This document shows positions 570 through 41,089 of a stretch of 64,000 bases of DNA, piece by piece; position 1 is the first letter of the stretch; every line of letters starts with the position of its first letter. Where the stretch lies: the NCBI RefSeq assembly GCF_030144855.1, contig NC_082712.1, positions 12,276,001 through 12,340,000 of the forward strand. Direction: 5' to 3'. Made by a program: the position numbers and the translations under genes. The notes beneath the pieces were generated by a model. The model was not told the DNA's origin. It did no database searches and worked only from the letters and a program-made list of their open reading frames with translations. This DNA comes from Hypanus sabinus (Eukaryota).

Positions 570-2706
570 ATCTGTGTGGGGAGAGGGTGTTGGGTTTGGT
601 GTTGTCGGCACTGTATTTTTTGAGAGGGAGGGGGTTGGGGGCTTGAGGTTTTCGATCTTCTGACGATCATCTTCCATGTGGGTGATCTGTTGGCTTTTGT
701 GCGAGGGAGGGAGGTGGGGGGTTGAGGTTGCGAGATTTTTCTTTTTCCTTTTCATATGGGGGTATTGACGTAATGAATCCCATGGTTTATCTGGATATCA
801 TGGTTATCTGGAGAAGATGAATATCAGAGTTGTATTCTACATGCAAACTTTTGACAATAAAATGAACCTTTGATCCTTTCCCCATAGACGCTGCCTGACC
901 TGCTGAGTTCCTCCAGTATCTTGTGTGTGTTGCTCTGGATTTCCAGCAACGGCAGATATTTTCCTGTTTATGACCATGATTGTTCTTGGCAATTTTTCTA
1001 CAAAAGTGGTTTCCATCACCTTCTTCTGAGCAGTGTCTGTACAGGACAGGTGATCCCAGCCATTATCAATACTCTTCAGAGATTGTCTGCCTGGTGTCAG
1101 TGGTCACATAACCAGAATTTGTGATCTGCACCAGCTGCTCATACAACCATCCACCACCTGATCCCATGGATTCACGTGACCCTGATCAGGGGCGAAGCAG
1201 GGGCTACACCTCGCCCAAGGGTAAAGTGAAGACTAGTGGAGGGAAGGAGTGTCTTACACCTCCTTTGGTAAAGACGTATCTTCACCCTGACACCCTGTTA
1301 TACATTGCAATACATATTAATTAAAAAACTGTAAATTTCAATAAGAAATATATACCTACATGTATAATTTTAAATTAAATAAGTAGCACAAAAAGAGGGA
1401 AAAATAGGGAAAAAAGTGAGCTGGTCCTCACTTTTCTGATTGTCCATTCAGAAATCCGACGGCAGAAAGGAAGAAGCTCTTCCTGAAACGCTGAGTGTGC
1501 ATCTTCTCTGGGAAGCTTCCTGATCCTCCGTTAGAACTCCACTCATTCCTCCCAAGTTCAGGCAAGGCCCCGCCAGGGGGCCCGTTGAAGGTCTGGGGGC
1601 CACCCTGTGTGAGGGACCGTCTGAGATGGAGTTGTGGTGGGGAAATGAATCTCATCACCAGCAGAGGCTGGGAGTGGCCGATATAACATTCATCCCCGGA
1701 GTCTGGACACAGAATACAATGGGTGCTGGAGGTTCTGACCCATCCCTGAACACTGCAGAAGATGCCGAGATGGTGTGGGAGAGAGCAGAGGCCTCTGTGG
1801 ACGTGCTGGAGTCCGTCGTGGGTTGGGGACAGGCCCCTCCCATCGGTGCTGCCTTCCTCTTTTGCTCAGTGCTGCCCCCAGTGTTCACTTAGTGAGAGAC
1901 AAGCTGGACCAGGACAATATCCAATCTACCATCCAGCTCCAATCCAGACCACTCAGGAACTTGGGCAATATTATGTCTTTTTGTGACTGTATGCTTTTCT
2001 GTCATCGTAACAATGTGTACTGTGTGCTGTTGCTACTCTGCTTTACAGCTTGTCCCTGGAGGAACACTGTTTTGTTTTGCTGTACGCACGTGTGGCTGAT
2101 TGACAATTAAACTTGAACTTGAATGTGGTGACGGGTTCTTTTCCGGGTCTGATCTACAGTCAGATCTCACTCGGGGACAGACAGATAAACCCGGGGGTGG
2201 GGTTGATTAGAGGAAGGATAATGGTAGCAGGCTACCCCCCACCCCACCCCCCCCAAAACCCTCCCCATGCCCTGCAGAATGTGTCAATGATATCTTACCT
2301 GGTCTGACCTGCAACCGGATCTCACTCTGGAACACATGTATAAATGGAGGTGTGACGTGCTCTCTGTAGGATGAATAATCATGCTTCATGTTCCTGAACT
2401 CAGCCAGACACAGGTAGCTGTGACTGTCCTCCACTCTCAGCTGCTTTATCCTGATCCAGGCGCTTCCCAGCTCTGGGTCCTCGACGAGCTCGTACCGAGT
2501 CACTCCGTTTTCCGCTGCCCACGATCCATTTCCATGGTGCCTGAATGTGACGATGATTCGGTAGGGATCCTTCCTCATCCACGTCACCGTGTGTGCGGTG
2601 AGGCTCTGCCGAGGCCGTGTGAACACACAGGGTAACGTGGCCGAAGCTCCCTCAGTTCCAGTCATCACAGAGACACTCTCATTGGGAGCTGAGGGAAGGA
2701 CAGGTG
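570..2706. repeat. Segmental duplication copy 1 (V-set exon plus downstream intron); paralogue at ~45526-47270
   Basis: Long high-identity colinear match, e.g. 765-1572 vs 45841-46643 and 2056-2706 vs 46640-47270. Copy 2 lacks ~1573-2055 and has different sequence in place of ~660-760. Confidence 0.9.
2299..2688 (-). CDS. Ig V-set exon (second V domain) of a Siglec-15-like receptor; lacks the sialic-acid-binding Arg
   Basis: Acceptor cctgtccttccctcAG at 2690-2689 and donor G|GTAAG at 2298. The exon is 390 nt, phase 1/1 and open: PNESVSVMTGTEGASATLPCVFTRP...TWMRKDPY...SAWIRIKQLRVEDSHSYLCLAEF...SEIRLQVRP. It has the B-strand Cys, C-strand Trp and D-x-x-x-Y-x-C. Confidence 0.85.
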
Positions 2707-2964
2707 CCAGAATAAATCGGTTAACCCTCAGCAAAAACGTTTAACACTGACAAAATTTCCAGCCAACAAAATAATAAAAACTCCCCACAGCACCCTCCTG
2801 AATGAAAACGGCCCCACATGTGTCTCACTCATTAAAAACCATTCAAACTAGGGAAACTCTTTAGAACATAAATCAGTCCCATCGGGCAGGAGATAAAGAA
2901 GCCTAAATCTCACACCACCACGTTCAGGAACAGCTAATTCCCTTCAGACATTCAGTTGTTGAAG

Positions 2965-3300
2965 CAATTGACACCATCACTAATCAGTGGAGTGTAACAA
3001 CACCAATCAGTACAGTCTAACAACAACGACCAGTACAGTGTAACACTGGCCATTACAGGGAAACAGCACAAATCAATACACTGCAGCAACACCAATCAGT
3101 ACAGTGTAACAACACTGATCTGTACAGTGTGATATCACTAATCAGTACAGTGTGACAACACAATCACCACAATGAAACAACACCAGTCAGTATTGTTTAA
3201 CAACACTAGTCACTGTACTGAAACAACACTAATCAATACAGAGTAATAATACTGATCAATACAGTATAACAACACCAGTCAGTCCTGTGTAATGGCATTA
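2965..3300. repeat. Degenerate CA-rich satellite (acaccaatcagtacagtgtaaca-like units)
   Basis: Repeated cagtacagtgtaacaacac motifs, degenerate, about 20-23 bp per unit. Confidence 0.7.
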
Positions 3301-3489
3301 GTCACTAACCTATTAACGTAGCTGAGGGAATATTTTGCATTATGAGCTGTGTGTGATGTGAGACTGTAGATGTTTTCTGGGTGCACCGTGATCCAGAGGA
3401 ACACTGTTACATTTTGTTGTGGAGATGTACACTCAGACGACAATGGACATGATCTTCATCTGTACTTCATCTTCATCTGTATCTTCATC

Positions 3490-3826
3490 TACACTGAACC
3501 CACTCCAGTGTGATACTTACCGTACTGAAAGCGTTCAACACCCTGAGCTGGTGTGTTTGACAGGGAATCCTACAGTGAACCCACTCCAGTGTAATACTTA
3601 CTGTACTGAAACTGTTCAACAGCCTGAGCTGGTGTGTTCGAGAAGGAATTCTACACTGAGCCCTCTCCAGTGTAATACTTACTGTACTGAAAGTGTTCTA
3701 CAACCTGAGCTGGTGTGTTTGAGAAGGAATTCTACAGTGAACCCTCTCCAGTGTAATACTTACTGTACTGAAAGTGTTCTACAACCTGAGCTGGTGTGTT
3801 TGAGAAGGAATTCTACAGTGAACCCT
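3490..3826. repeat. 81-bp minisatellite, ~4.2 copies
   Basis: The unit tacagtgaaccc...ggaattc recurs every 81 bp and translates on + as a 27-aa repeat (TVNPLQCNTYCTESVLQPELVCLRRNS). Confidence 0.9.
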
Positions 3827-3894
3827 GCTTTCTACAAAGATAGTGCACTGAGCTGTTTACTGTTTACCTGTGCTGCAAACTACATGCATTCTTA

Positions 3895-5805
3895 AAAAGT
3901 AGGGGTCCCAGGACAGATCCTTGTGGCACTCCACTACTCACCGAGCTCCAGGCAGAATACTTTCCTTCCACTACGATCCTCTGCTTTCTTCCTGTAAACC
4001 AATTTTTTATCCAAACAGCTAAGGTTCCATTGATTCCATGCCTCATGACTTTCTGGATGAGTCTCTCATGGGGGACCTTGACAAATGCTTTGATAAAATC
4101 CATGTAGACCACATCTACTGCCCTACCCTCATCAATTTCTTTTGTTACCTCTTCAAAAAACTCAGTCAGGCTGGTGAGGCACAACCTTCCCTTCACAAAG
4201 CCATGTTGACTATCCTTGAGCAGACTGGACTTCTCCAAATGCTCATAGATCCTATCCTTAAGAATCCTTTCCAATAGTTTTCAGAGCACCGACGTAAGAC
4301 TCACCAGTCTCTAGTTCACAGGATTCTCCCTATTAACATTTTTAAACAAGGGGAACTACATTTGCCATTCTCCAATCCTCCGGCACCTCCCCTGCAGCCA
4401 AAGAGGATTCAAAGATCATATCTACTGTTCCAGTGATTTCTTCTCTCACCTCCCACAGCAACCTGGGGTATATCACATCCAGTCCTGGGGACTTATCAAT
4501 TTTGATGTTTTTAAGAAGATCCAATATTTCTTCCTTAATCTCCACATTGTCCAGTGCACAGACCTGCTCTATTTCGATCTCACCCTGATCAAGGTCCTTT
4601 TCACTTGTCAATACTGAAGCAAAGTATTCATTTAGGACCTCCCCAACCTCCTGCGCCTCCAAGCACATATTGCCCTCCTTATCCTTTAGTGGCCCCACCT
4701 TTGTTCTATTCATCCTTCTGTTCTTCACATACGTGTAGAACGCCTTGGGGTTCTCCTTAATCCGACATGCCAAGACTTAGAGCTCTCCTCAGTCCTTTCT
4801 TAAGCACCTTCCTGGCTACCGTATATTTCTCATGAGCCCCTCCTGTTTCCTGCTTCTTATATCTAACATATGCTTCCTTCTTCCTCTGGACGAGTTGCCT
4901 CACGTGTTTTGTCAGCCATGGTTCCCTTTTCCTATCATTTTAAACTTGTCTCAGTGGGACAAACCTATCCTGAACACAGCACAAGTGGTCCCTAAACTTC
5001 TCCCACATTACTTCTGTGTTTTCACCCTTGAACATCTGTTTCCAATTTACTCTCGCTAGTTCCTGCCTCGTCCCTTCATTGTTAGCCCTTCCCCAGTTAA
5101 GCACTTTCCCATTTTGTCAGTTTTTATCCTTTTCCATAGCTATGCTGAAGCTGAGGGAGTTGTGGTCAATCTCACCAAATGCTCCCCCACCAAGAGGTCT
5201 GTCACCAGACCAGGTTCATTACCCAGAACTAGCTCCAGTATGGCCTCTCCTCTCGTCGGCCAGTCCACATATTGTGTCAGGAATCCTTCTTGAACACACC
5301 TGACAAATTCAGCCCCATCTATCCCCCTTGCAGTTGGGTGATGCCAGTCAATGTGAGGGAAGTTGAAATCACCCATAACTACAACCCTGTATTTCCTGCA
5401 CCATTCTAAAATCTGCCTGCTTATCTGCTCCTCGGTGTCCCGAGGGCTATTTGGGGGCCTATAGACTACTCCCAGCACAGCGATTGATCCCTTCCTATTT
5501 CTGACTTCCACCCAGACCAACTCAGTGGACATTCCCTCTGCAGCGTCCTCCCTTTCTATAGCCGTGATACTATCCCTGACCAGTAATGCTACTCATCTCC
5601 CCCTTTCTACCTCCCATTCTGTTCCTTTTAAAACAGCTAAACCCTGGTACCTGCATTAGCCAATCCTGTCCTTCCTCCAGCCAAGTTTCAGTAATGGCCA
5701 CAACATCGTAGTTCCATGTACTGATCCATGCTCGAAGTTCATCCCCTTTATTCCTAATACTCCTAGCATTGAAATAGACACATTTCAACCCCTCTAACTA
5801 TTATT
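3895..5805 (-). mobile_element. CR1 LINE ORF2 fragment (APE endonuclease to RT), degraded
   Basis: KCVYFNARSI (endonuclease start), VVMGDFNFPHIDW, QHGFVKGRLCLT, GVPQGSVLGPLLF; broken into several ORFs. Confidence 0.9.
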
Positions 5806-5811
5806 CTTAAA

Positions 5812-6235
5812 CTGTGGCCTCTAGTTCTGGACTCACCCATCAGCCAGAACATGCTTCCTGCCTCCAGCATGTCCAATCCCTTAATAATCTTATATGTCTC
5901 AATCAGATCCCCTCTCATCCTTCTAAATTCCAGTGTATACAAGCCCAGTCACTCCAATCTTTCAACATATAACAGTCCCGTCATTCCGGGAATTAACCTT
6001 GTGAACCTACGCTGCACTCCCTCAATAGCAAGAATGTCCTTCTTCAAATTTGGAGACCAAAACTGCACACAGTACTCCAGGTGGGGTCTCACCAGGGCCC
6101 TGTACAACTGCAGAAGGACCTCTTTACTCCTATACTCAATTCCTCTTGTTATAAAAGCCAGCATGTCATTAGCTTTCTTCACTGCCTGCTGTACCTGCAT
6201 GCTTACTTTCATTGACTGATGTACAAGACACCTTG
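5812..6235 (-). mobile_element. CR1 RT C-terminal fragment
   Basis: [45 protein letters not shown]. Confidence 0.85.
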
Positions 6236-6419
6236 ACGTTCTGTATCTGTGTACAGTCAGATGGCAATAAACTTGACCTTGATTGCTGCTTTTCTGATGC
6301 AACGCTCTGTGCCTGTGTTGCTGCGGCAACTGGATTTTCACTGCACCTGTGCAGACACGTAGGCAGACGTGCAATGAAAATCGTCCCTGCAGCAGCAAGT
6401 AAGTTCAGTTCCACTCACC

Positions 6420-6920
6420 TCATTACAGGAAGGATGAGGAAGCTTTCGAGAGGATGTAGAGGAGATCTACCAGGATGCTGCCTGGACCAGAGAGGATGTT
6501 TAATGAGGAAAGGTTGAGCGAGCTGGAGACTTTCTCTTGGGAGTGAAGAAAGATGAGAGGTGACTTGATAGAGGTGAACAAGATGATAAGAGGCATAATC
6601 GAGCAGACAGCCAGAGACTTTTCCTGGAAAGTATTGGGGGGATGTCAGAGGTCAGAGGCAGGTTCATTACACACAGAGTGGAGGGTGTGTAGAACAGATG
6701 GAGTTCAACCCAGTTAAGTGTGAAGTGATTCATTCTGGTAGGTCAAATTTGAATACAGAATATATGAATGGTAAGACTGGTGGCAGTGTGGAGGATGAGC
6801 TGGATCTTGGGGAGTCTGTCCATAGGACACTCAAAGCTGCTGCACAGGTTGACAGTGGTGTTAAGAAGGTGTCTGGTGTACTGGCATTCATCAGCTGTGG
6901 GATTGAGTTCAAGAGCCCTG
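6420..6920 (+). mobile_element. CR1 fragments, plus strand, rearranged
   Basis: MEFNPVKCEVIH...AAAQVDSGVKK...GIEFKS CR1 RT motifs. Confidence 0.75.
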
Positions 6921-6933
6921 AGGTAATCTCTCT

Positions 6934-9900
6934 TTTTCAACAAACTATACCGAAGAGATTGACAGAGGAATACTTTGGGACTCTTTTAAGGCTTTTATTC
7001 ATGGACAAATTATCTCATATTCTGCTGGGAAAAGAAAACAAAGATATTTAGATATAGCTTTATTGGTGGATAAAATTAAAGAAATTGATAAGATTTATTC
7101 CGTTACTCCTACCAAGGAACTTTATAAGAAGAGAGTTGAACTGCAAATGGAACATAGCTTACTGTTATCTTCTTCAATTGAGAATCAATTAATTAGGACT
7201 AGGGCTCAATTTTATATTCATAGTGATCGAACTGGTAAATTGTTAGCTAATCAATTAAAAGCTATTTCGACTAAGCGACAAATTATTAAAATTTGGTAAT
7301 CTGGTAAGACGGTAAGACGGTAATCTGACTACTGATCATAAAGAAATTAATAATACTTTCCAAGATTTTTATAAATCTTTATATCAATCAGAATTTGATG
7401 GTGATATGTCTATGATGGATAATTTTTTTAACAATTTGAATATTCCCAAACTGACAGATGAAGATCGAAGTTTATTTGATGCTCCTATTTCTATGGCGGA
7501 GGTAGGAGAAGCTATTTCATCGATGAATTCAAGGAAAGCTCCTGGCCCCGATGGTTATATTATAGAATTTTTTAAAACTTTTTCTTCTTTGCTTTCCCCT
7601 TGGTTATGTGAAATCTTTAATGATGCATTTATTAAGAAGAGACTACCCCAGTCTTTTTATGAAGCTACTATTTCTTTAATTCTTAAAAAAGATAAAGATC
7701 CTACTTTATGTGCATCTTATCGCCCTATATCGTTACTAAATGTAGACTCTAAGATTCTTACAAAAATTTTAGCTGTTAGGTTAGAAAAGGTACTATCACA
7801 GATTATTTCAGGAGATCAAACTGGTTTCATTAGGAACCGATACTCCTTTTTTAATGTTAGAAAATTGATCAATATAATTTACACTTCCTCACCCACAACC
7901 CCAGAATGTGTTATTTCATTAGATGCTGAAAAAGCTTTTGATAGAGTTGAATGGATATACTTATTTAATGCCTTGAAACATTTTAACTTTAGTTCTAATT
8001 TTATATCATGGATTAAATTAATATATTATAAACCTGTTGCTTCTGTCCTTACGAATAATTATAGATCCTCTTTTTTTCAATTATCTCGTGGTACGAGACA
8101 AGGTTGTCCCTTAAGTCCTTTATTATTTAATATTGCATTAGAACTTTTAGCCATTGCTATTCGTGAATCCCCTAATATTTTTGGTATTACCCGTAATGAG
8201 AAATTATACAAGTTATCGCTCTATGCTGATGACTTGTTGTTATATATTTCTGATCCTGATAATTCTATTCCCGCTATTCTATCCTTGTTGGTTCAATTTG
8301 GTAGTTTTTCTGGTTACAAATTAAATTTGGATAAGAGTGAACTCTTCCCTTTAAATGCACAAACTTTACTGAATGACAGGATACCATTTAAAATTGTTAC
8401 TGACAATTTTATTTATTTAGGTATAAAAATTACCAAGAAATATAAAGATTTATTCAGATTGAATTTTTTACCTATGCTTCATCAAATTCAACAACTTACT
8501 ACTAGATGGTCTCCTTTATCCTTATCATTGTTTGGTCGGATCAATGCTGTTAAAATGATGATTTTACCGAAATTTTTATATTTATTTCAAGCCTTACCAA
8601 TTTTTATTCCTAAGTCTTTTTTTGATAGCATTGATTCAAAAATTTCCTCATTTGTGTGGCAAAATAAAAACCCCAGATTAAGTAAAAGACAGTTACAGAA
8701 ATCTAAAAAAGATGGTGGTTTAGCTTTACCCAATTTTAGATTTTACTATTGGGCGAATAATATTCGGAATTTATTATACTGGAAATTAGATTTAGATTTA
8801 CCATTGTGCCCACAGTGGGTAAATTTAGAATGTAATGATACACAAGGATATTCTCTATTTTCTGTTCTTGGTTCTTCTCTCCCTGTTGATTTAGTTAAAC
8901 TTAATAAACAGATATCTAACCCTATTGTCAAACATACATACGAATTTGGTTTCAATTTCGTAAATTTTTTACTCTAAAAAACTTCGTTCTTGATAGCCCT
9001 ATCTTAATTTTTTCTTTAAACCTTCTTTAATAGATCAAGCTTTTAGCATATGGAAAAGGAAAGGTATAATATGTTTTCGTGATCTTTTTTCTGAAGGTAG
9101 TTTGATGTCTTTTGATCAACTTTCTAACAAATTTAAATTACCTAAATCTAATTTTTTTAGATATTTACAAATTAGAAACTTTTTGCATAAAGTTTTACCA
9201 TCCTTTCCTAATTCAACTTTGATAGATTTTTCAGATATGATTTTTACTTTAAATCCCTGTCAGAAGAGATTAGTGGCTCTTATTTATAATATGATTATGA
9301 AAATACAACCAGAGGTATCGGGTAGAATTAAACAGGAATGGGAAAAAGAACTTCAATACAATATTTCAACGGAAAAATGGGAAAAAATTTTACAAATGGT
9401 TAATTCTTCTTCTATATGTGCTAAACATGCTTTAATACAATTTAAAATTGTACATAGAGCTCATATGTCTAAAGATAAGCTTGCTCGGTTTTATTCTCAT
9501 GTTAACCCTCAATGTGACAGATGTCATTTAGATGTGGCTTCATTGACCCACATGTTTTGGTCATGTCCTACTTTACATAATTATTGGAAGGACATATTTG
9601 CTACCATTTCCTCAATTTGGAATATTGATTTACAACCTCATTTTATCACTGCAATTTTTGGTATACCAAATGAAGATGATAGTCGATTCTCCCCTTCAAT
9701 TAGACGAATGATTGCCTTTGTAACATTAATGGCCAGGAGATCTATATTACAAAATTGGAAAGAAATAAATCCTCCTACCACATTTCAGTGGTTCTCTCAA
9801 ACTATTTCTTGTTTAAGTTTAGAGAAAATTAGAAGTACTATTTTTGATTCATCAATTAAATTTGAAGAAACTTGGGGACCATTCATTCGACACTTTCATA

Positions 9901-10275
9901 TGAATTAATTTGGCTTCTTCCGGACCTTTATTCTTATTATTCTTGTTCTGGTATGGAGTTCCGGAGTTTTTTGACACTATCATATACATATAAACTATTA
10001 TTACTGCCCATGTTAGTTTAGTTTTTTTTCATTATTTTCTTAAATATACATTTTTTCTTGTATTTTATACTTTTTTTTCTTTTGATGATTATTTTTAATC
10101 TTTTTCATGTATAATCAATGTAGATTAGATTGATTATTGTACGATCTTTTTTCGCTGGTAGTTTAATAAGATATTTTTATCTTGTTACTAATTTAATTTC
10201 AAATCTATTGTATTCATAACCTATTTAATATATTATGTTTTTTTTATAAAAACTAATAAAAAGATTGAAAAAGAA
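6934..10275 (+). mobile_element. 5'-truncated L1-clade LINE (ORF2 RT, C-terminal domain, AT-rich 3'UTR) with 13-bp TSD
   Basis: 523-aa ORF with SLDAEKAFDRVEW, GTRQGCPLSPLLF, LYADD and a C-terminal CDRC...HMFWSC motif. Direct repeat aggtaatctctct at 6921-6933 and 10276-10288; A-rich tail. Confidence 0.93.
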
Positions 10276-10619
10276 AGGTAATCTCTCTAGAGTAGGTTAC
10301 ATGGTCAGTACAGCATTGTGGGCCGAATGGCCTGTAATGTGCTGTAGATTTCTGTTTCTATATTCTCTGTAAGAGAGGATCACTGATCCTCCAGGTTCGG
10401 GGGTTCAGCTCAGGGTAACAACCCTGACGGGTAAAACAATGTTGTTATGGAAACTGCAATGGAGAATCCTTCGACATCTGAGTGTGACGGTATTCCTGAG
10501 TCCCACTCGGGAATTGTATGACTGACAGCAGTGAAAACCGAGAGGAAGCTACTGACACGATGAAGGAAGCCCTGAATGCTGCCAGAGATGGAGGCCCTTC
10601 ATTGCTGACTGAAATGGCA

Positions 10620-10753
10620 NNNNNNNNNNNNNNNNNNNNNNNNNNNNNNNNNNNNNNNNNNNNNNNNNNNNNNNNNNNNNNNNNNNNNNNNNNNNNNNNN
10701 NNNNNNNNNNNNNNNNNNNNNNNNNNNNNNNNNNNNNNNNNNNNNNNNNNNNN
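10620..10753. other. Assembly gap (N run)
   Basis: Run of n characters. Confidence 1.
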
Positions 10754-11085
10754 GGGGAGGGCGGAGAGTGGGAGGGGGGGGAGAGGGAGGGGAGAGGGAG
10801 AGAGACTCTTAGAGACTTGGATGATGTAAAAATGGAGGGCATGTGGGAGGCAAGGGGGAGAAATTGATCTTGGAGCAGGTTTAAGGGTCAGCACAACATT
10901 GTGGGCTGAAGGGCCTGTACAGTGCTGTTGTTCTATGTGCTAGTGCACATGACAATCACATCTATTTGACATGATCGTCCTGCAAAATATACTTGTACAT
11001 TATGAATAAAATGAGCTTTCAGTGAGATGAAATGTGAAATGATTAGTGTAGTTTTACAACTCAATGCTTAAACATCGATCCTCAC

Positions 11086-11469
11086 CTCCCACAGACAGAT
11101 TTGTTAGAAGCACCGTTCGAAACTTGCCAACATTGAGCTCCACCCGGCACCAATACCGACCACCGTCACTCCGGTTCAGTCGCTCCACCATTATCGAGGC
11201 ATCTCTCCGACTGAGGTTCCCCACGAATCCGAACCGCCCTCCTCCAGCCTCCTGTGTCGTTGTATCGCACCCGGAGGGGCCGGAACCGGGATATGTGCAG
11301 TTAAACACCAGTTTTTTAGCACCTGGTTCCACCCTGTACCAGATCACGGAGCCGTTCAGTGCGACATCAGGAGGTGGGTGGGTGAAAGTACACGGTAACA
11401 CAGCGGGAGCCCCTTCCTCCGCAGAGACCACATCAGCACCGGACATTGTCCAACCAGAGATCGAATAGT
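11086..11469 (-). CDS. Ig V-set exon, Siglec-15-like, retains the essential Arg (YWCRVE)
   Basis: Acceptor ctctctgtccccAG at 11471-11470 and donor G|GTGAG at 11085. The exon is 384 nt, phase 1/1 and open: WTMSGADVVSAEEGAPAVLPCTFTHP...VIWY...VFNC...GCDT...RFGFVGNLSRRDASIMVERLNRSDGGRYWCRVEL. It closely parallels the human Siglec-15 V domain as recalled (not searched). Confidence 0.9.
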
Positions 11470-11471
11470 CT

Positions 11472-11660
11472 GGGGACAGAGAGATAGTGAGAGTGTATGT
11501 GAGTGAGTGAATGAGAGAGTCAGAGAGAGAGATAGTGAATGAGTGTGAGAGAGTGAATGAGAGAGAGTGAGATAGAGAGAAACAGTGAAAGAGAGAGGAG
11601 GGAGAGAGAGAGGCAGTGATAGAGAGAGTGAGTGAGAAATTGAGTGAGAGAGAGAAATAG
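11472..11660. repeat. GA/GAGT microsatellite (polypyrimidine tract upstream of the V exon on the minus strand)
   Basis: Imperfect (GA)n/(GAGT)n run. Confidence 0.9.
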
Positions 11661-12139
11661 AGGACAATATTTGAACAACAATCTGCTGAAGGAATTCAGC
11701 CGGTCGAGCTGCATCTGTGGGTGTGAAAAGACGTTGAAGTCTTGGTTTGCATCGGGACTGTTAGAGGAATGTCGAATGGCCAGAGGGAAAGGGGAAGTGA
11801 AACTGGAATCTGAGGTGATTGATGGACAGAGGAGGGGTGAGAGAGGATACTGAGGTGATTGATAGATTGAGGAGGGTGGACAGGAGTATCAGGTGATTGA
11901 GGATTGAGGTGGGGTGAGACGGGTCTGAGGTGATTGAGGTGGGGTGTGAGGTTAAGGGCAGGTTGTGCTGGGTAGGGAGGGGAAGGGGGATGGGAGATGT
12001 GGTAAGTGGTGACAGATGGAGAAGAGGGAAGGAAAGGAGATTCAGATGGAGAGAGGTGATTGTAATCAGTTGTTTGAGGGAGGACCACCAAGGACTCACT
12101 CTCCAGCCTGATACTCTGAGATGAGAATGGGACCCACTG

Positions 12140-12792
12140 GGGGAGATGCGTCTGGCAGGTGGAACCGGGTCAAGCGTGGGGAAGGTGGGGAAAGTGGGTG
12201 AAAAATCTGGGAAACAGACATGGAGATTCACAAACCTGCCTGTCCAGGCAGACCCATTGTCTCTGCTTGCTCCTGCCCCACTGAACTCATTTCTGCCTAT
12301 CTCGACTCTGTTTTATCTCCCCTTGTTCAAACCCTTCCCACCTATGTCCGTGATTCTTCCCATGCTTTACATCTCTTCAAAGATTTCAAGTTTCCTGGAC
12401 CCCACCACCTCATTTTCAACATGGACGTCCAGTCCCTATATACCTCTATCCCCCACCAGGAAGGTCTCCGAGCTCTCCGTTTCTTCCTGGATTCCAGACC
12501 CAGCCAGTCACCCTCTACCACCACTCTTCTCCGCCTTGCGGAATTAGTCGTCACGCTTAACAATTTCTCCTTGGCTCCTCCCACTTCCTCCAAACTAAAG
12601 GTGTAGCCATGGGCACCCGCATGGGTCCTAGCTATGCCTGCCTTTTTGTCGGCCATGTGGAGCAATCTATGTTCCAAGCCTACACCGGTATCTGTCCTCC
12701 TCTTTTCTTACGTTATATCGACGACTGCATCGGCGCTGCTTCCTGCACACATGCTGAGCTCGTCGACTTCATTAACTTCACCTCCAACTTTA
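12140..12792 (+). mobile_element. Penelope-like element RT fragment
   Basis: HKPACPGRPIVS, MDVQSLYTSIP, AMGTRMGPSYACLFVG, RYIDD. Confidence 0.88.
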
Positions 12793-13359
12793 CAATAAAT
12801 ATACATAAAAGTTCAATTTGATAAGCAGTGCAAAGGTTTTGCTGTTGTCCGGGTGAGCCAAGGCCACGTGAGAAGCCAGTGAGATTGCATCCACTGTAGA
12901 CCTGTTGTGGTGACGGGCAAATTGTCATGGGCCCAGGCTCTTCCTGAGGCAGGAGTGGATTCCAGCCAAGACCAACCTCTCAAGGCATTTCATGGCAGTA
13001 GATGTGAGTGCCACTGGGTGATGGTCGTTAAGGCAGCTCACCCTGCTCTGCCTGGGCACCGACCGGTCTGATGTTACCCTTTTGAAGCAGGTGGGGCCTC
13101 TGACTGCAGCAGTGAAGGATTGAAGATATCCTTCATCTTTCCCAACAGTTGATTGACACAGGCTTTCAGCGATCTTCCAGATACACCAGCAGGGCCTGAC
13201 AACTACATGATCAGTAATGGATAGTCAGGACTGAGAACAGGCTGTGATCCATAGGAGGGTCCAGGCTGGGGGGTTTATATGTGCAATAATGGATACTCAG
13301 GAGTGGGCTACACGCTGTGGTTGGTGCTGTAGAGACCGGAGTGGAGGTTACGTCAGAAT

Positions 13360-13915
13360 CAGAATCAGATTTAATATAGAAACAGTAGAATAGACAACGA
13401 GATTGCATCACTGTCGTATGTCATGAAATTTGTTGTTTTGCGGCAGCAGTTCAAGGCAATGTATAATAATAAAATCTATAAATTGCATATAAAATAAGGA
13501 AAGGAAATAAACAAGTTGGGCAAAAAGAGTGGAAAAATACTGAGGAAGAGCTCATGGATTCATTGACAATTCAGAAATCTGATGGCGGAGGGGAAGAAGC
13601 TGTTCCTGAGTCGGTGACTGTGTGTCTTCAGACTCCTGTTCCTCCTCCCTGATGGTGGCAATGAGAAGAGGGCATGTCCTGGGTGCTGGGTCCGTAATGA
13701 TGGATGCCGCCTTTTTGAGGCGTTGCATTTTGAAGGTGTCCTGGGTGCTGGGGACACCAGTGCTCACGATGGAGCTGACTGAGTTTGTAACTTTCTGCTG
13801 GTCTTTCTGACCCTGAGCAGTGGCCCCACCAGACCAGACGGTGATGCAGCCAGTTAGAACGCTCCCCAGGTATCTCTGTAGAAATTTGCCAGTGTCTCTG
13901 GTGACAAACCAGTTC
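13360..13915 (-). mobile_element. Rex1/Babar-like LINE 3' fragment
   Basis: SVLTGCITVW...RLKKAASIITDP..HALFSLPPSGRR..RLRNSFFPSAIR, with a (tctgat) tail. Confidence 0.75.
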
Positions 13916-14569
13916 ACCTCAGACTCTTATTGAAATATAGAGCGTTACAGGCTGGGGTCGAGTCAGGGTTTCGGGGGTTTGTCATTGTCGTCTGTTCCCT
14001 GGGGCCGATGGCTTTTACAATCCTGCCACTTCATTTTCAGATGGGGAAGTGATTGGAGAATCGGGGGCACCGGTTACGGAGAGGAGAGCTCTTGGAATTA
14101 GCTCGGAGTGACGGAACAGTTGCAGCATTCAGGAGGACATTCAGCCCATTGAGTTCATACTGGCCCTGTGTAAGAACAACCCAGCCAGTCCCTCTCCCCT
14201 CACCACCAGATTCTGGCATCTTTCACCTTCCTTTCCAGTCCTGGTGAAGGATCCCAGGCCAAAATATTGACTGTTTATTCCCCTCCATAGAAGCTGCCTG
14301 AGCTGCTGAGATCCTCCAGCATTTTGTGTGTTACTCACGTTGTGGTCGATCGTGATGTCAGAAGTTCATTTTTATTACCTGATAATGGGAAACAGAATGG
14401 CTCCGTGAACCTCAGGCACCTGGTGAGCCAGGGAGGCAACAACCGGGATTTCTCAGTAGCAGATGACCATAGATTTACTGTATTTAACACGAGAACATAG
14501 AACACAGAGCAGTAGAGCACAGGCACAGGCCCTTCAGCCCACAATGTTGTGCTAAACCAATTAAATTAG

Positions 14570-15055
14570 TGACCTACTAAACTAACCCCTCTGCCTACAC
14601 AATGTCCATTTCAATGTCCAATGTCTGTTCATGTGCTGATCAAGATGTCTCTTAAAAGCCACTAATGTATCTGCCTGTAACACCTCCCCAGGCAGAGCAT
14701 TCCAGTCACCCGGCACTGTCTGTGTAAAACATTTACCCCTCACATCCCCTCTAAACCCCTTTCACCTTCAACGCAGGCCTTTGGTGTTAGACATTTCAAC
14801 CCTGGGAGGAAGATACTCTCTGTCTGCTCTCTCTGTGCCTCTCATAATCTTACAAACTCTATCAAATCTCCCCTCAGACTCCGTCGCTCCAGAGAAAACA
14901 TATAGCACATGCCCTCTAATCCAGGCATCATCCTGGTGAACCTCGTCTGTACCCTCTCCAAAGCCTCAACATACCTCCTACAGTGGGGTGACCAGAACTG
15001 TACACAATACTCCAGATGTGGCCTAGCTAGAGTTTTATAAGGCTGTAACAAAACT
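14570..15055 (-). mobile_element. CR1 3' fragment
   Basis: LYKTLARPHLEYCVQFWSP...RGDLIE. Confidence 0.8.
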
Positions 15056-15159
15056 TCATGACCTTAGCCTGGGTGGAGGAGGGGAAAGGACACTGAGAAT
15101 AAGAATCAAGAGGTTATAGTCATTGAGGGGGGATCTCTTTGCAACCTGATAGGTAACCT

Positions 15160-15333
15160 GAATATTTATAGGCCTAGATAGAGTGGATGTGGAGAGGATC
15201 TTTCCTATAATCAGTTTGAATATTTATAGGCCGAGATAGAGTGGATGTGGAGAGGATTGTTCCTATAGTCGGTTCGAATATTGATAGGCCTAGGTAGAAT
15301 GGATTTGGAGAACATCTTTCCTATAGTCATTTG
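15160..15333. repeat. 58-bp tandem triplication of CR1 3'-derived sequence
   Basis: gaatatttataggcc...ttcctata begins at 15160, 15218 and 15276. Confidence 0.85.
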
Positions 15334-15699
15334 GTGGAAGAACATCTCAGATTCCATCGGAGGGGGGGGGGGGGGGCCTCCATCCTGACAGCATCAGCAT
15401 CGATTTCTCCAAGTTGTGGTAATTTCTCCTCCCTTCTGCCTTCTCTCTGATACGCCCTCCTTTTCTCCTTACCTGCCTATCACCTCCCTCTGATTCCCCT
15501 TCTCCATCCTTTCCTCCCATGGTCTACTCTCCTATCCTATCAGATCCCTTCTTCTTCAGCACTTTACCTTTTCCACCTATCACCTCCTAGCTTCTTACTT
15601 CATTCCACTGCCCTACCCAGACACCCTCTCTCTCACCTGGTCTCTTCTCTCACCACCATCTTGTACTCCATCCCCTCCCCCCCACCTTTGAATATTGTC

Positions 15700-18600
15700 T
15701 TAGAACACAGAACATTGAAATTTACAGAACATTGCAGGTGCTTCGTAGCATAATGTTGTACCAACCATGGAAACCTGCTCTAAAAACGGCCTAGAATTTC
15801 CCCAGCGCATAGTCCTCTATTTTTCTAAGCTCCACGTACCTACCTAAGGGGCTCTTAAAAGACCCTATTGTACACTTTCATCACCGCCACTGACAGTGCA
15901 TTCCACGCACTCACCACTCTCTGTATGAAAAACTTACTCCTGACATCACCTCGGTACCTATTTCCAAGCACCTTCAAACTATTCCCCCTCATTTTAGCCA
16001 TTTCAGCCCTGGGAAAAAGCCTCTGGGTATCAACATGATCAATGCCCCTCGTCATCTTATACACCCCTATCAGGTCACCTCTCATCCTCCGTCACTCCAA
16101 GGAGAAAAGGCCAAGATCACTCAACCTATTCTCATAAGGTATGCTCCCCAATCCAGGCAACATCCTCGTAAATCTCCTCTTCACACTCTCTATAGTATCC
16201 ACATTCTTCCTGTAGTGAAGTGACCAGAACTAAGCACAGTACTCCAAGTAGGGTCTGACCAGGGTCTTATATCGTTGTAACATTACCTCATGGCTCTTGA
16301 ACTCAATCCGACAACTGATAAATGCCAACACACCATATACCTTCTTAACAACACTGTCAACCTGTGCAGCAGCTTTGAGTGTCCTATGAACACAGACCCA
16401 ATGATCTCTTTGATCCTCCACACTGCCAAGACTTACCATTAATACTATATTCTGCCATCATATTTGACCTAGCAAAATGAACCACTTCACACTTATCCAG
16501 GTTGAAGTCCATATGCCACTTCTCAGCCCAGTTCTGCATCCTATCAATTTCCCACTGTAGCCTCTGACAGCCCTCCACACTATCCAAAACACCTCCAATC
16601 TTTGTGTCATCAGCAAACTTTCTAACCCATCCTTCTACTTCTTCATCCAGGTCACTTAAAAATTACAAGGAGGACGGAAACCAGTACAGATCCTGGCGAA
16701 ACTCCACAGTCCACCGACCTCCATGCAGAACATGGACCATCTACGTCACCCTTTGCCTTCTGTGGTCAAGCCAATTCTGGATCCACAAATCAAGGTCTCC
16801 TTGGATCCCATGCCTCCTTACTTTCCGAAGGAGCCTTGCATGAGGAACCTTATGGAATGCCCAAATGAAATCCATATTCACTACATCAGCTGATTTACCT
16901 TCATCCATGTGTTTTGTTACATCCTCAGGGACTTCAACCAGGCTCGTAAGGCACGACCTGCCCTTGACAAAGCCATGCTGATTATCCCTAATCAGATGAT
17001 GTCTCTCCAAATACTCATAAATCCTGCCTTTCAGGATATTGTCCAGGAAATTGCCCACCACTGAAGTCAGACTCTCTGGTCCATACTTTCCTGGGTTATC
17101 TCTACTCCCTTTCTTGATCATGGGAACAACATTTGTAAACTTCCAATACTCTGGTACTTCTCCCATTCCTATCGATGATGCAACGATCATTGCAAGAGGC
17201 TCAGCAATCTCCTCCCTCACTTCCCACAGTAGCCTGGGGTATATCTCATCCAGTCCCAGTAAACTATCTAACTTTATGCTTTTCGAAAGGTCTGGCACAT
17301 TCTCTCTCCTTGCACACGTTTCCACCATCGCACCTAATGGGTCCTATTCTCAAACGGGTCATCCTCGTGCTCTTCACATACTTGTAGAATGTTTAGGGTT
17401 TTCCTTAATCCTGCTCACCAAGACCTTCTCATGGCCCCTTCTGGCTCTCCTAATTCCATTCTTAAGCTCCTTCCTAGCAACCTTGGAATTTTCTAGAGCT
17501 CTAACAGTACCTAGTTTCTTGAACCTTTCGTACGCTTTTCTTTTCTGCTTAACTAGATTTTCCACATCCTTTGTACACCATGGTTCTTCAACCCTACCAA
17601 CCTTTCCCTGCCTCAATGGAACATACCTATGCAGAACTCCATGCAAATCTTCCCTGAATATTTGACACATTTTGGCCGTGCATTTCATTGAGAACATCTC
17701 CTCCCAATTTATTCTCCTAAGTTCCTGTTTGTTACGTACCCATAATGGTTTAAATGAACCAGCAGCAATAGACCATGCCTGTAGTCTGGTTTTGATGTTG
17801 AAACCACTATCTTTATTAGTATCTACTTAACATAGCAGCGTAAACAAGAATAATCAAAAGTTAACAGTGTTATGAGTATCCATATGTGTAAATATAACTC
17901 CCAAACTACTGAGCTCGGGGGGCGGGGGGGCTCCAGGCTTAAAATCGTGAGATGGTGAGGTATGAAAGTTCAGTTCATCCTCAGATTAAATGATGTGAGA
18001 GAGAGAGATTTGTTATCCAAGGTGAATGTCGAGAGAGGGCATTTATGTCGTATTCCACAAGTTCCATGGTGGTAAAACAAGATAACAATTGCCATAGGAT
18101 TTATCCATTGTTATTCCAAATCCTTTTACAGATTATCACCAATAGTAGCTTATCACAAGGATAAGGGAACTACAAAGGGAACTACCACCCAGGCAAGGGT
18201 TAACACATAGGTAGATTCCACAAGATTGCCCCCATTCACACAACGTGACAGCCACTTATCAACGTGCTGGGTCAATGCACAACCCACCCTTGTGGGCACT
18301 CGGAAGTTCCAACCAGTGACCCCTTAGTCACTGGCTTCCTTCCCTTGTCCGACTCCAACTGCGACTGACTGTGTGTGAGTGAGTGTCCTTGCTTAAATCA
18401 AAACAAGCTGCAGAGTTGAATAGTTCCGCCCCTCTCTCTCTCTTAGTGAGAATCAAACAGGAGCTGAGAAAGCTGGTGGCTGACGTCACTCAGGCATTCT
18501 CTCTTAAAATGACAGTTCACGGCAAGATAGACCTAGGGGTTCATCACACTCCCTAACAGCATCATATTTCCCCCGACCCCAATTACGTGTTTTCCCAAAT

Positions 18601-19750
18601 TGTCCGCTCCTATCCCTCTCCAGAGCTATGGTGAAGAAGACAGAGTTGTGCTCATTACCTCCAAAATGTTCTCCCACAGAGAGATCTGACACATGACCAG
18701 GTTCATTTCCCAATACCAGATCGAGTACAGCCTCTCCTCTCGTTGGCTTATCTACATATTGTGTCAGAAAGCCTTCCTGAACACACCTAACAAACTCCAC
18801 CCCATTAAACCCCTCTCTCTAGGGAGATTCCAGTCAATAGTAGGACAGTTAAAATCACCAATCACAACAACCTTATTATTAGAATAATCTGTCTCCCTAT
18901 CTGCTCCTCGGTATCCATGTTACTATTGCAGGGTCTATAAAAACACCCAGTAGAGTTATTACCCCTTTCTGTTTGTGACCTCCACCCACACTAACTCCGT
19001 AGACCATCCCTCCATGACTTCCTCCTTTTCTGCAGCCATGACACTATCCCTAATTAGCAATGTCATGCCCCCAGCTCTTTTGCCTCCCTCTCTGTTCTTT
19101 TAGAAACCTCTGAAGCCGGGTATAATCAGCAGCCATTCCTATTCCTGAGGCATCCAAGTCTCTGTAATGACCACAACGTCAATGTATTGATCCACGCTCT
19201 AAGTTAATCGGTCTTGTTTATGATACTCCTTGCATGAAAATAGACACATCTCAAACCAAAAGGCTGAGTGCAACTTCGCTCTAACATCTACCCATGCCTC
19301 CTCACAAACTCACTACTGTCTCTACTTGTGCTCCAACCTCCCCATCTTCTGCCTTTTCACTTCGGTTCCCACACCACTGCAAATCTCGTTTAAACCCTCC
19401 CCAAAAGCCTTAGCAAACTTCCCCGCAAGGATATTGGTCCCCCTCAGATTCAAGTGCAACCTGTCCTCTTTGTACAGGTCATACCTGCCCCAGAACAGGT
19501 CCCAAGGATCCAAAAATCCTTCAGCCACACATTGATCCTCCATCTCATTCTATTCCTATACTCACTGTCATGTGGCACAGGCAGCAATCCCGAGATTACT
19601 ATCTTCGAGGTCCTGCTTCCCAGCTGCCTTCCGATCTCCCTCTATTCTGTCTTTAGGACCTCCACCCTTTTTCTGCCTTTGTCGTTGGTACCAATATGTA
19701 CCACGACCTCTGGCTGCTCACCCTCCCATTTCAGGATATTGTGGACTGCC
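15700..19750 (-). mobile_element. Long degraded CR1 (esterase ORF1 end, endonuclease, RT, 3' end) interrupted by a solo LTR
   Basis: WDLFWGRYDLYKEDRLHLN (ORF1), CVQEGFLTQYVDKPTRGEAVLDLVLGNEP, NQHGFVKGRSCLT, RPYLEYC. Confidence 0.88.
17730..18548 (-). mobile_element. Solo LTR (TG...CA, ~820 bp), Gypsy-like, inserted in CR1
   Basis: On the minus strand it begins TGTGATGAACCCC and ends GGGTACGTAACA, with AATAAA near the 3' end. CR1 sequence resumes on both sides, and the 3' end resembles the LTR at 28219-28785. The TSD is degenerate. Confidence 0.7.
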
Positions 19751-22069
19751 CCCGTCCTTTCCAGCCCAAATCGATGACAGTACATTCCTCTCAGTAGTTG
19801 ATGCCTGATCTGCTGAATTCCTCCAGCATTTCCTGTGTGTTACTCCACAGGGCACAGCTTCAGCTTAGAGGGACGTACCTTTAGAATGGAGATGAGGAGG
19901 GATGTCTTTAGCCAGAAGGCATTGAATCTGTGGAATTTATTGCCACAGAAGTTTGTGGAGGCTGTCATTGGGTGTACTTAATGCAGAGGTTGATAGGTTT
20001 TTGACTTCTAAAGGCATCAAAGGTTATATGGAGAAGGCAGGAAAATGGGGTGAAGAAGGATAATAAATCCTAAAATTGCGAGTTGCTACAGTGGTTACAG
20101 TGTACAGTGGTTACAGTTATGCTGTTACAGAACCAGCAACCTGGGTTCAATTCCCACAGTTGCCTGTATGGAATTTGATGAAAGGTCTTGTCTCAAAACC
20201 TCAACAATTTATTCCCCTCCATAGATTCTGCCTGACCTGCTGTTTCTCCAGCATTTTATGTGGCTCTGAATTTCCAGCATCTGCCAAATCTTTTCTGTTT
20301 GTACTTTTGCATGGAGCCAGCCTGAGGTCAATGGGCAGAATGGCCTTTTAAAAGGGCTACAACCAGTGCTCAATGCCATCAAGCAGTAAAACCTCTTGCT
20401 TCAATGCACTTCAGTGGAACCTGTGACAGTTTTGCAAACAGCAATCCAATAGAGCACTCGATCAAAATGTCCATTATTGTCAGGTAGATTATTGAACTTG
20501 TAAAGCTTCTGGCAAGCAATAAACAAAAGCTGGAAATCTCGAGCAACAAACACAAAATTCTGGAGGAACTCGGCAAATCAGGCAGCACCTATGGAGAGGA
20601 ATAAACTGTCAACATTTCAAGCTGAGATCCTAATGCAGTTCTTGCATCCTTTACAGATAGGGTAAATGCAAGCAGACTTTTTCCACTGAGGATGGGTGGG
20701 ACTACAAACAGAGGTCACGGGTAGAGGGTGTAAGGTGAAAATTTTAAGAGGAACTCAGAAGGTGGTGAGACTGGAATGACTCTATCAACAACACGGCTTC
20801 ATTGAGAGGTTGAGATGGGGGTCAAACTATGACCATGTCCAACAAGACAGAGTTACTTACATACCCAGAGCAGAACTGGCTAATATGAGAGGGTCTAATT
20901 TTAAGGTGACTGGTGAAAGTATAATGAGTAAGTTTTCGACAGAGAGTGGTGGGTGTGTGGAACATCCTGGTGGTCGTAGAGGCTGAGACATTAGGGACAC
21001 TTAGATAGACACACTGATGGAAGAGAAATGGAGGGTTATGTGGGAGGGAAGGGTTAGATTGATCTTGGGGCAGGGTAAAAGATTGGAGCAACATTGAGAG
21101 CTGAAGGGACTGTACTGTGCTGGACCGTCCAGTGTTCTCTGCGTCCTTTTGGTATTCAATAGATGGCCACAAGTGTGAAGCAGAAAAAAAACCATTGTTA
21201 CTCTGGATCCAATGAGGCACAAAAATACAATAAAATAAAGAGCCAATAATAATAACACAATAAATATAAATACTGTACATATGATAGTTTCTATACATAG
21301 ATTGATATATAGATTGACAGATAGACTTTATGTCCATAAAGTGACTCCAGGCTCAGGAGTGTCTGTACTTCAGGTGACTGACAGGAAATGATAAAGTTGT
21401 TGTTCATATGGAACTTTATGTATATACAATCAATCCACATAAATAAGCTGTCTAATGTACTAATACTTATTGTGTTCTTTAGTATTATAAATTATTATGT
21501 TATTCTTATTCAACTTCAATATAATATCCCAACTCTGTACTCAATATGTCTTCACCAACATCTTGTACAACTACAACATCACACAACCCAGGACAACAGT
21601 GACCACTTGAGCACCCAGTCAGTACTCCCTCCTTCCACCGCCAGCGCACAGTGGCCGCGGTGTGCGCCGTCTACAACACGCAACGCAGTTACTCGCCCTG
21701 CTATTCCAGCAGCCACCACCTCTCCACATCAGGGTATCGGGTGGATGTGAACACCACCACCCGCAGGCTCCCCTCCCAAGTATATTAATTTACTGAGACA
21801 CAATACAGAATAGGCCCCCTCCGGCCTTTTGAGCCGTGATGCCCAACAACCCGAGCCTAATCACGGGACAATTCACAATGATCAGTTAACCCACCAACCA
21901 GTAGATTGTGGGAGAAAACCAGAGCACCTGGAGGAAACCCATGAGGTCACAGTGAGTTCAGAGTTCAGAGTTCAATGTATATATAGATTATACAACCTTG
22001 TGATTTCTCTCCTTACAGGCAGCCACAGAACAAAGAAACCCAAAAGAACCCATCATTACTACAGTCCTG

Positions 22070-23165
22070 ATTGATTAGTTACCGAAGCTGGGCCTCAGTA
22101 CTTCTCTCTTCAACTGGATCCTCGAATTCCTAACCGGAATGTCACAATCTGTGCAGATTGCTAATAACATCTCCATCTCACTGACAATCAACACTGGTGC
22201 ACCTCAAGGATGTGTTTTTAGCCACTGTTCTAGTCTCTCTACACCCATGACTGTATGTCTAGGCATAGCTCAAACACCATCTATAAATTTGCCGACAATA
22301 CAATCATTGTTGGTAGATTCTCAGGTAGTGATGAGAGGGCGTACAGGAGTGAGATATGCCGATTAGTGGAGTGGTGTCGCACCAACAACCTTGCACTCAA
22401 CGTCAGTAAGACCAAAGAGCTGACCGTGGACTTCAGAAGGGTAAGACGAGGGAACACAAACCAATCCTCATCAAGGGATCAGAAGTGGAGAGAGTGAGCA
22501 GTTTCAAATTCCAGGGTGTTTCAAAACATCGGAGGACCGAACCTGGTCCCAACATGTCGATGTGATTACAAAGAAGGTACGACAGCGGTTATATTTCACC
22601 AGGAGTTTGAGGAGATTTGGTATGTCACGTAAAAGGCTCGCCCATCTCTACAGACGTACGGTGGGGAGCATTCTGACTGGCTGCATCACCGCCTGGAATG
22701 GGGGGGTGGGGGGCTACAGCATAAGATGGAAGGAATCTGCAGAGAGCTGTAAAATTACTCGGCGCCATCGTGGGCTCGAGCCTCCGTAGTTTCCAACACA
22801 TCTTCGAGGAGTGGTGCCTCAGAAAGGCAGCATCCATCATTAAGGACCCCCATCACCCAGGACATGCCCTGTTCTCATTGCTACCACCAGGCAGGAGGAA
22901 CAGGAGCCTGAAGACACACACTCAGCGATTCCGGAACAGCTTCTTCCCTCTGCCATCCGATTTCTGAATGAACAATGAACCCTGAAAACTACCTCATTAC
23001 TTTTTTATTTCTGTTTTGGTGCTATTATTTAACTACTTTATACACATATATACACTTACTGTGATTCAGTTTTTCTCTGTTATTAGGTATTGCATCGTTC
23101 TGCCGCCACAAAGTCAACAAGTTTCACAACATATGTCGGTGATAGTAAGCTTGATTCTGATTCTG
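22070..23165 (+). mobile_element. Rex1/Babar-like LINE RT 3' half
   Basis: [31 protein letters not shown]; ends in ttgattctgattctga. Confidence 0.82.
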
Positions 23166-23584
23166 AAGGCCGTCGAACAGCCAATGTGCAAAGGGGAAAG
23201 ATCGTGAAAACAATAAAAATAAGCAAATAGCATTGAGAACTGAAGAACGTACAGAGAGCGGCGAGAATTGAACCTGGGTCACAGGGAACGTAAAGCATCA
23301 CGCTAACCACCACACTACAGCTTCGCTCCAAATTCATCACCACCCAGGCTTGGAATTGTGCCCGGCCTTTAACTGGGATCAAACTTGGACGTCTCTTCCC
23401 AATAGTACTGGGGTTCATTGTCACCAGAAGGCAGTCCACCCCAGCACTCAGGGAAGGACAGGGTCCCAACGCCAACCCTCCACTGGCAGAACCAACGTCC
23501 AAATAGATCGCGCTGCACCACAAAGTAAAACGAGCCTTTAGGAGAGAGACAACGGGGAGACAGGGGACAATGGAAAACACCTAC

Positions 23585-23645
23585 TGTATCCCCGGACTGA
23601 GACGGACAACAGGACGGTGCAGAGACAAACCCGGAGAGAGAGCAT
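23585..23645 (-). CDS. Signal-peptide (leader) exon of the Siglec-15-like gene
   Basis: ATG at 23645; encodes MLSLRVCLCTVLLSVSVRGY plus 1 nt. Donor A|GTAGGT at 23584 is phase 1, matching the V exon at 11469 (junction codon A+AC = Asn). It lies in a non-repeat island and is not in the ORF track. Confidence 0.72.
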
Positions 23646-40548: not shown

Positions 40549-41089
40549 GTAGACTTTGGTCTGTGGGGAGACTGGACTGACAGGGTTTGGTATGTGGGGA
40601 GATCGGACAGACTGGGTTTGGTCTGAGGAGAGATCGGAAAGACTGGGTTTGGTCTGAGGGTGATTGGACAGACTGGGTTTGGTCTGAGGGGAGATTGGAC
40701 AGACTGGGTTTGGTCTGAGGGGAGATTGGACAGACTGGGTTTGGTCTGAGGGGAGATCGGACGGACTGGGTTTGGTCTGAGGAGAGATCGGACAGACTGG
40801 GTTTGGTCTGAGGGACATCGGACAGACTGGGTTTGGTCTGAGGGACATCAGACAGACTGGGTTTGGTCTGAGGGGAGATCGGACGGACTGGGTTTGGACT
40901 GAGGGGACATCGGACAGACTGGGTTTGGTCTGAGGGGACATCGGACAGACTGGGTTTGGTCTGAGGGTAGACCGGACAGACTGGGTTTGGTCTAAGGGAG
41001 ATCGGACAGACTGGGTTTGGTCTGAGGGTGATCGGACAGACTGGGTTTTGTCTGAGGGAGATTGAACAGACTGGGTTTGGTCTTAGGGA
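40549..41089. repeat. 30-31-bp minisatellite, ~17-18 copies (gactgggtttggtctgaggggagatcggaca)
   Basis: ggtctg recurs at 40681, 40712, 40743, 40774, 40805, 40835, 40865 and onward. Confidence 0.95.

Follow-up and report, generated by a model that had tools for sequence, protein, structure and literature searches.

Three exons on the minus strand of a 64,000-nucleotide (nt) stretch of the genome of the Atlantic stingray, Hypanus sabinus (NC_082712.1, positions 12,276,001 to 12,340,000; here called the window and numbered from its first letter) are confirmed as real, forming the front part of a stingray immune-receptor gene. Very likely this gene encodes a type I membrane receptor of a Siglec-15-like elasmobranch family and begins with these three exons. 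Its product would comprise a signal peptide, two V-type immunoglobulin (Ig) domains (V1 and V2), a lysine-containing transmembrane (TM) segment and a short tail, i.e. a receptor of the activating type. The demonstrated part consists of the exons with their splicing signals and phases, the two V-set domains, the likeness of V1 to Siglec-15, and the V1-V2-TM(Lys) join made by P0031, the RefSeq protein model of the locus. The architecture is that of a Siglec-15-type V domain followed by an old V domain that lacks the sialic-acid-binding arginine, without a C2 domain, in a family that is annotated but unstudied.

Reading of the sequence reproduced exactly the exon coordinates, phases, intron lengths and 278 open codons of the original prediction, which had been made from the DNA alone. 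The leader exon (61 nt, 23645-23585) starts with the ATG at 23645, contains 20 codons plus one base coding for a signal peptide and ends at the donor ACA/GTAGGT (the slash marks the exon boundary). The V1 exon (384 nt, 11469-11086) lies between a pyrimidine-rich acceptor (...tgtccccag/A) and the donor GAG/GTGAGG, and the V2 exon (390 nt, 2688-2299) between the acceptor ...ttccctcag/C and the donor CAG/GTAAGA. All six splice signals are intact, with GT-AG sites. The joined 835 nt form 278 open codons plus one base, and every boundary is in phase 1. Intron 1 is repeat-rich and measures 12,115 nt (11470-23584); the length of intron 2, 8,397 nt, includes 134 N and is hence an estimate. For the leader exon an alternative donor exists, a GT located 4 nt downstream, which shifts the frame into a stop within exon 2; therefore only the proposed donor works. 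The leaders of the related models P0003, P0005 and P0014, which are paralogues or orthologues, share 87-90% identity with that of the window, and the leader-V1 junction (...RGY/N/YS...) agrees with the junctions of the paralogues.

The first V domain is clearly of the Siglec-15 type. Both V exons score well above the Pfam V-set cut-off of 26 bits (V1, 45.2 bits; V2, 44.8 bits), which would not be explicable by chance. In phmmer searches against the PDB the best solved-structure match of V1 is human Siglec-15 (7zoz_A, E = 1.3e-17, 67 bits), followed by CD33 (E = 1.7e-09) and HAVCR1 (E = 2.4e-05). Aligned to human Siglec-15, V1 keeps the motifs LPCTFTHP and CRVE. An arginine directly follows the F-strand cysteine (WCRVEL, aligned to human FCRVEF), in agreement with the family alignment. 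V1 also has the B- and F-strand cysteines and an extra C'-C'' cysteine pair, all four at aligned positions. In human Siglec-15 the corresponding features are the pairs C64-C142 and C95-C104 and Arg143, which bonds the carboxylate of sialic acid (PMC10264397). By analogy with the human structure, V1 would form both disulfide bonds. In the domain tree V1 groups with the V domains of bony-vertebrate Siglec-15 (support 93/86). A TIM or HAVCR1 identity, the name that NCBI gives to some paralogues, was considered and rejected based on the E-values of HAVCR1 and Siglec-15 above; no mucin domain occurs in the family models.

The second domain is V-set as well, and it differs from V1 at the decisive position. 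V2 has the canonical B-F cysteine pair and a long, variable F-G loop, and it carries leucine instead of the sialic-acid arginine (YLCLAEF). The arginine is absent at this F-strand position in all 14 aligned V2 domains. Of the columns of that alignment 16 are invariant and 23 nearly so, next to an F-G loop of variable length; the stingray V2 keeps the conserved columns except at His 44, a nearly invariant position where it has isoleucine. The V2 signature (VTWMRKdPYrhIVTF ... YLCL), with its F strand lacking arginine, is present in the window. The AlphaFold2 model of V2 (predicted local distance difference test, pLDDT, 85.5) has nine strands including C' and C'', and the 50 matches listed by Foldseek against the PDB are V-type Ig domains. 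The V2 profile aligns to the V1 profile with an hhalign probability of 99.6%, but to a Siglec-15-type C2 profile with only 3.5%. Together with the fold and the Pfam assignment, this rules out that V2 is a diverged C2. Where Siglec-15 typically has a membrane-proximal C2-set domain, the stingray gene has a V-set domain. A full-length homologue model folds into two Ig domains and one helix (predicted template modelling score, pTM, 0.74).

The original prediction had described a Siglec-15-related receptor in which a V domain with arginine is followed by one without, and had found no C2-set exon between them. Both points stand, given the V1 arginine, the Siglec-15 match and the V2 leucine on the one hand and, on the other, a tblastn search that detected no C2-like exon, no exon for a tail with an immunoreceptor tyrosine-based inhibitory motif (ITIM) and no further Ig exon in the readable window. 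The same approach revealed no additional TM exon in the window other than the broken TM exon of a neighbouring gene. Ig-like snippets at ~1136-1162 and ~1492-1527 belong to a repeat block that is duplicated, and do not represent exons. The suggestion that V2 is a recent copy of V1 within the gene has to be given up, as the two domains share 27% identity and fall into separate clades, V2 joining an old group of second V domains.

The continuation of the gene is provided by P0031 (LOC132396284, Hypanus sabinus, GCA_030144855.1). This model is 100% identical to the window over the 35 C-terminal residues of V1 and the whole of V2, with exon 3 corresponding to P0031 residues 37-165 at 100% identity. 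It joins V1 directly to V2 and proceeds into a TM segment with a lysine (...LCIPLGLKTL...); its end reads ...LCIPLGLKTLTLLVMGAVLY... and is followed by a nine-residue tail without an ITIM. The membrane lysine and the short ITIM-less tail that characterize Siglec-15 are both present in P0031. Since the annotated gene spans 14.6 kb, the gene would end up to ~3.4 kb beyond position 1 of the window.

Could leader and V1 belong to one transcript and V2 to another, either as two genes or because V1 is spliced past V2 to another membrane exon? Four family models with V1 only and ITIM tails (P0014, P0016, P0017 and P0024) show that V2 is not obligatory, and an unread stretch of 134 N (10620-10753) lies between the two V exons. 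This assembly gap is located wholly within intron 2 and is non-coding. In the direction of transcription it lies 333 nt after the V1 donor and ~7.9 kb before the V2 acceptor, and CT-rich low-complexity sequence adjoins it on the higher-coordinate side, towards the V1 exon. No reading frame passes through the gap, and the uncertainty is confined to the length of intron 2. An exon hidden in it is not expected, because V1 passes straight into V2 in P0031 and in all homologues, and because C2-bearing relatives have their C2 after the second V and not before it. Moreover, no leader-like exon is found between V1 and V2, no ITIM-type TM or tail exon in the window, and a skate gene has the same exon order with an intron of 2.1 kb between the V exons. 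Separate transcripts are therefore very improbable, and the single gene joining V1 to V2 is retained.

A word-seeded search for the family to which this gene belongs yielded 33 proteins. Sharks, rays and skates account for 32 of them, and the remaining one, P0033, derives from a read assembly. At least 25 of the 33 have the V1-V2 architecture, so that the V1-V2 join proposed for the window recurs in P0031 and in homologous models, and the skate locus has the same exon plan. A V2 profile was searched against 1.84 billion representative proteins, and family members were found in about 20 elasmobranch species. Several paralogues are located on the same chromosome as the stingray gene, which is not single-copy and does not correspond to the single conserved orthologue expected of Siglec-15. 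The family occurs in three forms. The first combines the TM lysine with a short tail (activating type), the second has a different TM segment and ITIM-like tails, either with V2 (P0032, P0036) or without it, as in the four V1-only models, and the third consists of hybrids. The stingray gene is one ordinary member of this C2-less, tandemly expanded subfamily with activating and inhibitory forms.

The exon plan is shared with a second species. In the thorny skate (Amblyraja radiata) the leader of the corresponding locus, L001, measures 61 nt and the V1 exon 387 nt, with 9.07 kb of intron between them; V2 follows after a second intron of 2.1 kb, and the TM exon ~4 kb beyond it. The stingray exons follow this elasmobranch plan of a 61-nt leader, a long intron, V1, V2 and TM, in phase 1. 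The skate 'Siglec-15' model P0026 ends early (L001, CM021368.1, 17636-18030 and 22032-22181). In the skate locus the F-G loop of the V2 exon apparently contains a frameshift and the TM exon a stop, which suggests a pseudogene or else an error of the assembly.

In the domain tree all chondrichthyan second V domains, together with a long-branched frog protein, form one clade (98/94), whereas V1 groups with bony Siglec-15. The second-V clade spans proteins from chimaera, shark and ray, among them V2 of the window. The second V therefore predates the split between chimaeras and the sharks and rays, and V2 is part of an old second-V lineage common to sharks, rays and a chimaera. An approximately unbiased (AU) test of an origin of V2 within cartilaginous fish only gave p = 0.0525, for a group that was named after the tree had been seen.

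Is the gene, then, the one-to-one orthologue of vertebrate SIGLEC15, with its C2 domain replaced? NCBI calls several family members 'Siglec-15', V1 keeps the extra cysteine pair that is absent from the V-V-C2 proteins of cartilaginous fish, and the TM lysine motif is like that of bony-fish and lungfish Siglec-15. Against this stand the many tandem copies per genome and the presence in cartilaginous fish of V-V-C2-TM(Lys) proteins (Callorhinchus XP_042192165, Mobula XP_062903801 and Heptranchias XP_067838218), which have a third domain similar to the C2 of Siglec-15 in bony vertebrates. In the domain tree the V-V group and the V-V-C2 group of cartilaginous fish are each other's closest relatives, and bony Siglec-15 is related to the two together. 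Since V-V-C2-TM(Lys) genes exist alongside it, the stingray gene is better regarded as a C2-less paralogue than as the Siglec-15 orthologue, and one-to-one orthology is, in our judgement, hardly credible.

Tandem V domains also occur elsewhere. The lungfish and gar Siglec-15 models contain two V domains, and each duplicate pairs with its own first V, indicating separate and recent events. These V expansions may be real, or the models may fuse tandem genes. Independently duplicated, arginine-bearing V domains are seen in Protopterus P0072 and P0043 (seven V domains) and in Atractosteus P0089. The proposal of an architecture specific to cartilaginous fish thus holds in part: a C2-less V-V family does exist in elasmobranchs, but tandem V domains as such are also present in the lungfish and gar models. 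Going further, we can sketch a scenario in which the ancestral Siglec-15 of jawed vertebrates was V-V-C2, bony vertebrates lost the middle V, and a C2-less V-V derivative radiated in sharks and rays into a paired system whose V2 F-G loop would provide a second specificity not directed at sialic acid; we regard it as speculative and rather unlikely.

Several observations weigh against a functional receptor gene as described here. V1 has phenylalanine at a position where a tyrosine is conserved in aligned bony-vertebrate Siglec-15. P0031 begins only at an internal methionine of V1, so that the signal peptide and the greater part of V1 are missing from it, and in the window the leader is joined to V1 only by homology and splice logic. 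The TM exon, which would be located to the left of the window, is known from P0031 only. Among the family models with a listed source none is transcript-derived (Logan or transcriptome shotgun assembly, TSA) and all are genome annotation; the sole protein from a read assembly, P0033 (Logan), is a V-C2 protein. Finally, a neighbouring V2 pseudo-exon and a broken TM exon demonstrate that the surroundings are decaying, so that the stingray copy could be silent.

Such surroundings are typical of a tandem array in which copies are gained and lost. The V2 pseudo-exon, which is not part of the gene, is located at 46875-47249 on the minus strand. With 79% protein identity it carries an in-frame TGA, an F-strand cysteine-to-arginine change and a 9-nt deletion; its 3' end and donor are damaged, and neither V1 nor a leader lies beside it. 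It is part of a segmental duplication relating 770-2706 to 45843-47269, with 95% identity downstream and 86% over the exon. Further upstream of the gene, a lysine-containing TM exon of the next family gene (63692-63874, minus strand) is cut by an in-frame stop. A possible tail exon of the same gene is found at 61871-61999 (minus strand), and its V exons lie past the right edge of the window.

It could hence be argued that the stingray copy, although its sequence is intact, is not expressed or is dying, as happens to members of a birth-and-death array, its exons being a relic. The stop and the lost F-strand cysteine of the V2 pseudo-exon, the in-frame stop of the neighbouring TM exon, the RefSeq model without a leader, the broken state of the skate copy examined and the enlargement of the introns by long interspersed nuclear elements (LINEs) would all be consistent with such decay. 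However, 278 of 278 codons are open, the six splice signals are intact and the structural residues are kept, and the TM exon beyond the window is intact in P0031. The leaderless start of P0031 recurs in several family models of other species, which begin at the same conserved internal methionine, and we read it as a failure of the annotation to bridge the long first intron. Overall, a relic is distinctly unlikely, and a complete receptor gene with signal peptide, V1, V2 and a lysine-containing TM segment accounts better for the window.

The introns owe part of their length to mobile elements. A LINE remnant at 7406-9908 (plus strand) lies antisense in intron 2 and contains a 523-amino-acid open reverse-transcriptase reading frame (Pfam RVT_1, 7e-39) and a zf-RVT reading frame (2e-05). 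It explains much of the size of intron 2, whose skate counterpart measures just 2.1 kb. A reverse-transcriptase (LINE) fragment is located in intron 1 (16741-17328, minus strand), and another LINE reverse-transcriptase remnant elsewhere in the window (31248-31832, plus strand). Intron 1 also contains a tRNA/SINE-like element (SINE, short interspersed nuclear element) at 23254-23337 on the minus strand, 250 nt downstream of the leader; an Rfam scan of the 64-kb window gave no match. The unusual N-terminus (MNLERS...) of the paralogue model LOC132396281 isoform X1 matches this element at 93% identity, so that the first exon of that isoform probably arose by exonisation of a repeat or is an artefact of the annotation.

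Two other observations concern the flanks. At 758-859 (minus strand) there is a weak match, 65% over 34 amino acids, to the non-membrane C-terminus of the paralogue model P0002. It sits in the duplicated block 770-1570 and could represent an alternative terminal exon for a soluble form or a shared repeat. A tandem array of ~31-bp units is present at 40555-41093, with 87-90% identity between copies, and an inverted related block follows 3.5 kb away (44185-44448).

Human and mouse Siglec-15 (V-C2-TM with lysine, coupled to DAP12/DAP10; 7ZOZ) share with the stingray gene the V1 arginine, the four cysteines and, as seen in P0031, the membrane lysine and short tail. In contrast, the second domain of the stingray protein is V-set and not C2, the gene is multi-copy and arranged in tandem with inhibitory paralogues, and its ligand binding is putative. 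The chondrichthyan V-V-C2-TM(Lys) proteins, modelled as 'Siglec-15' or 'Siglec-12', have the same order of first and second V domains, and their second domain also lacks the arginine and belongs to the V2 clade (98/94). They differ in keeping a third, C2-type domain and in the absence of the extra cysteine pair from their first domain, while the stingray family has no C2 exon. In Siglec-15 of bony fish and lungfish (P0033, V-C2-TM(Lys); Protopterus XP_043934105, V-V-C2) the V domain groups with the V1 clade and the TM lysine is shared, but the second V of lungfish and gar is a recent, arginine-bearing copy of their own first domain, whereas the stingray V2 is old and lacks the arginine.

The organization of the family resembles that of paired receptors (Siglec-5/-14, Siglec-11/-16, KIR, LILR and PILR), where ectodomains are combined either with a charged TM segment and short tail or with ITIM tails, in tandem arrays that include pseudogenes. 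Unlike these, the stingray family consists of a Siglec-15-type V plus a second V; the likeness is one of organization and not of descent. Based on Siglec-15 biology, V1 is expected to bind sialylated glycans through its F-strand arginine. Since V2 carries leucine in place of this arginine, it would be unable to bind a sialoglycan in the same way, and more likely it acts as a stalk or, through its variable F-G loop, as a second contact surface. An adaptor of the DAP12/DAP10 type would associate with the membrane lysine, so that ligand binding would activate the cell. By analogy with other paired immune-receptor families, the ITIM-tailed paralogues may be the inhibitory counterparts.

At the locus itself the analysis improves in practice on the RefSeq gene model, with the signal peptide and most of V1 restored. 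Few Siglecs are considered to have been conserved between fish and mammals, and Siglec-15, as a single V-C2 receptor, is counted among them; the study of fish Siglecs treats teleost Siglec-15 only, with the conserved arginine and TM lysine (PMC7226832). Our literature searches turned up no work on Siglec-15-like genes of cartilaginous fish, which is weak evidence as most subscription journals are outside the coverage; the family, predicted by annotation in about 20 species, seems to be unstudied. Cartilaginous fish differ from the conserved pattern in that the Siglec-15 scaffold is combined with a second V lacking the arginine and has expanded into a tandem family of activating and inhibitory forms. 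This family is a natural comparison for the role of the membrane-proximal domain of Siglec-15 and a case of paired-receptor evolution outside mammals.

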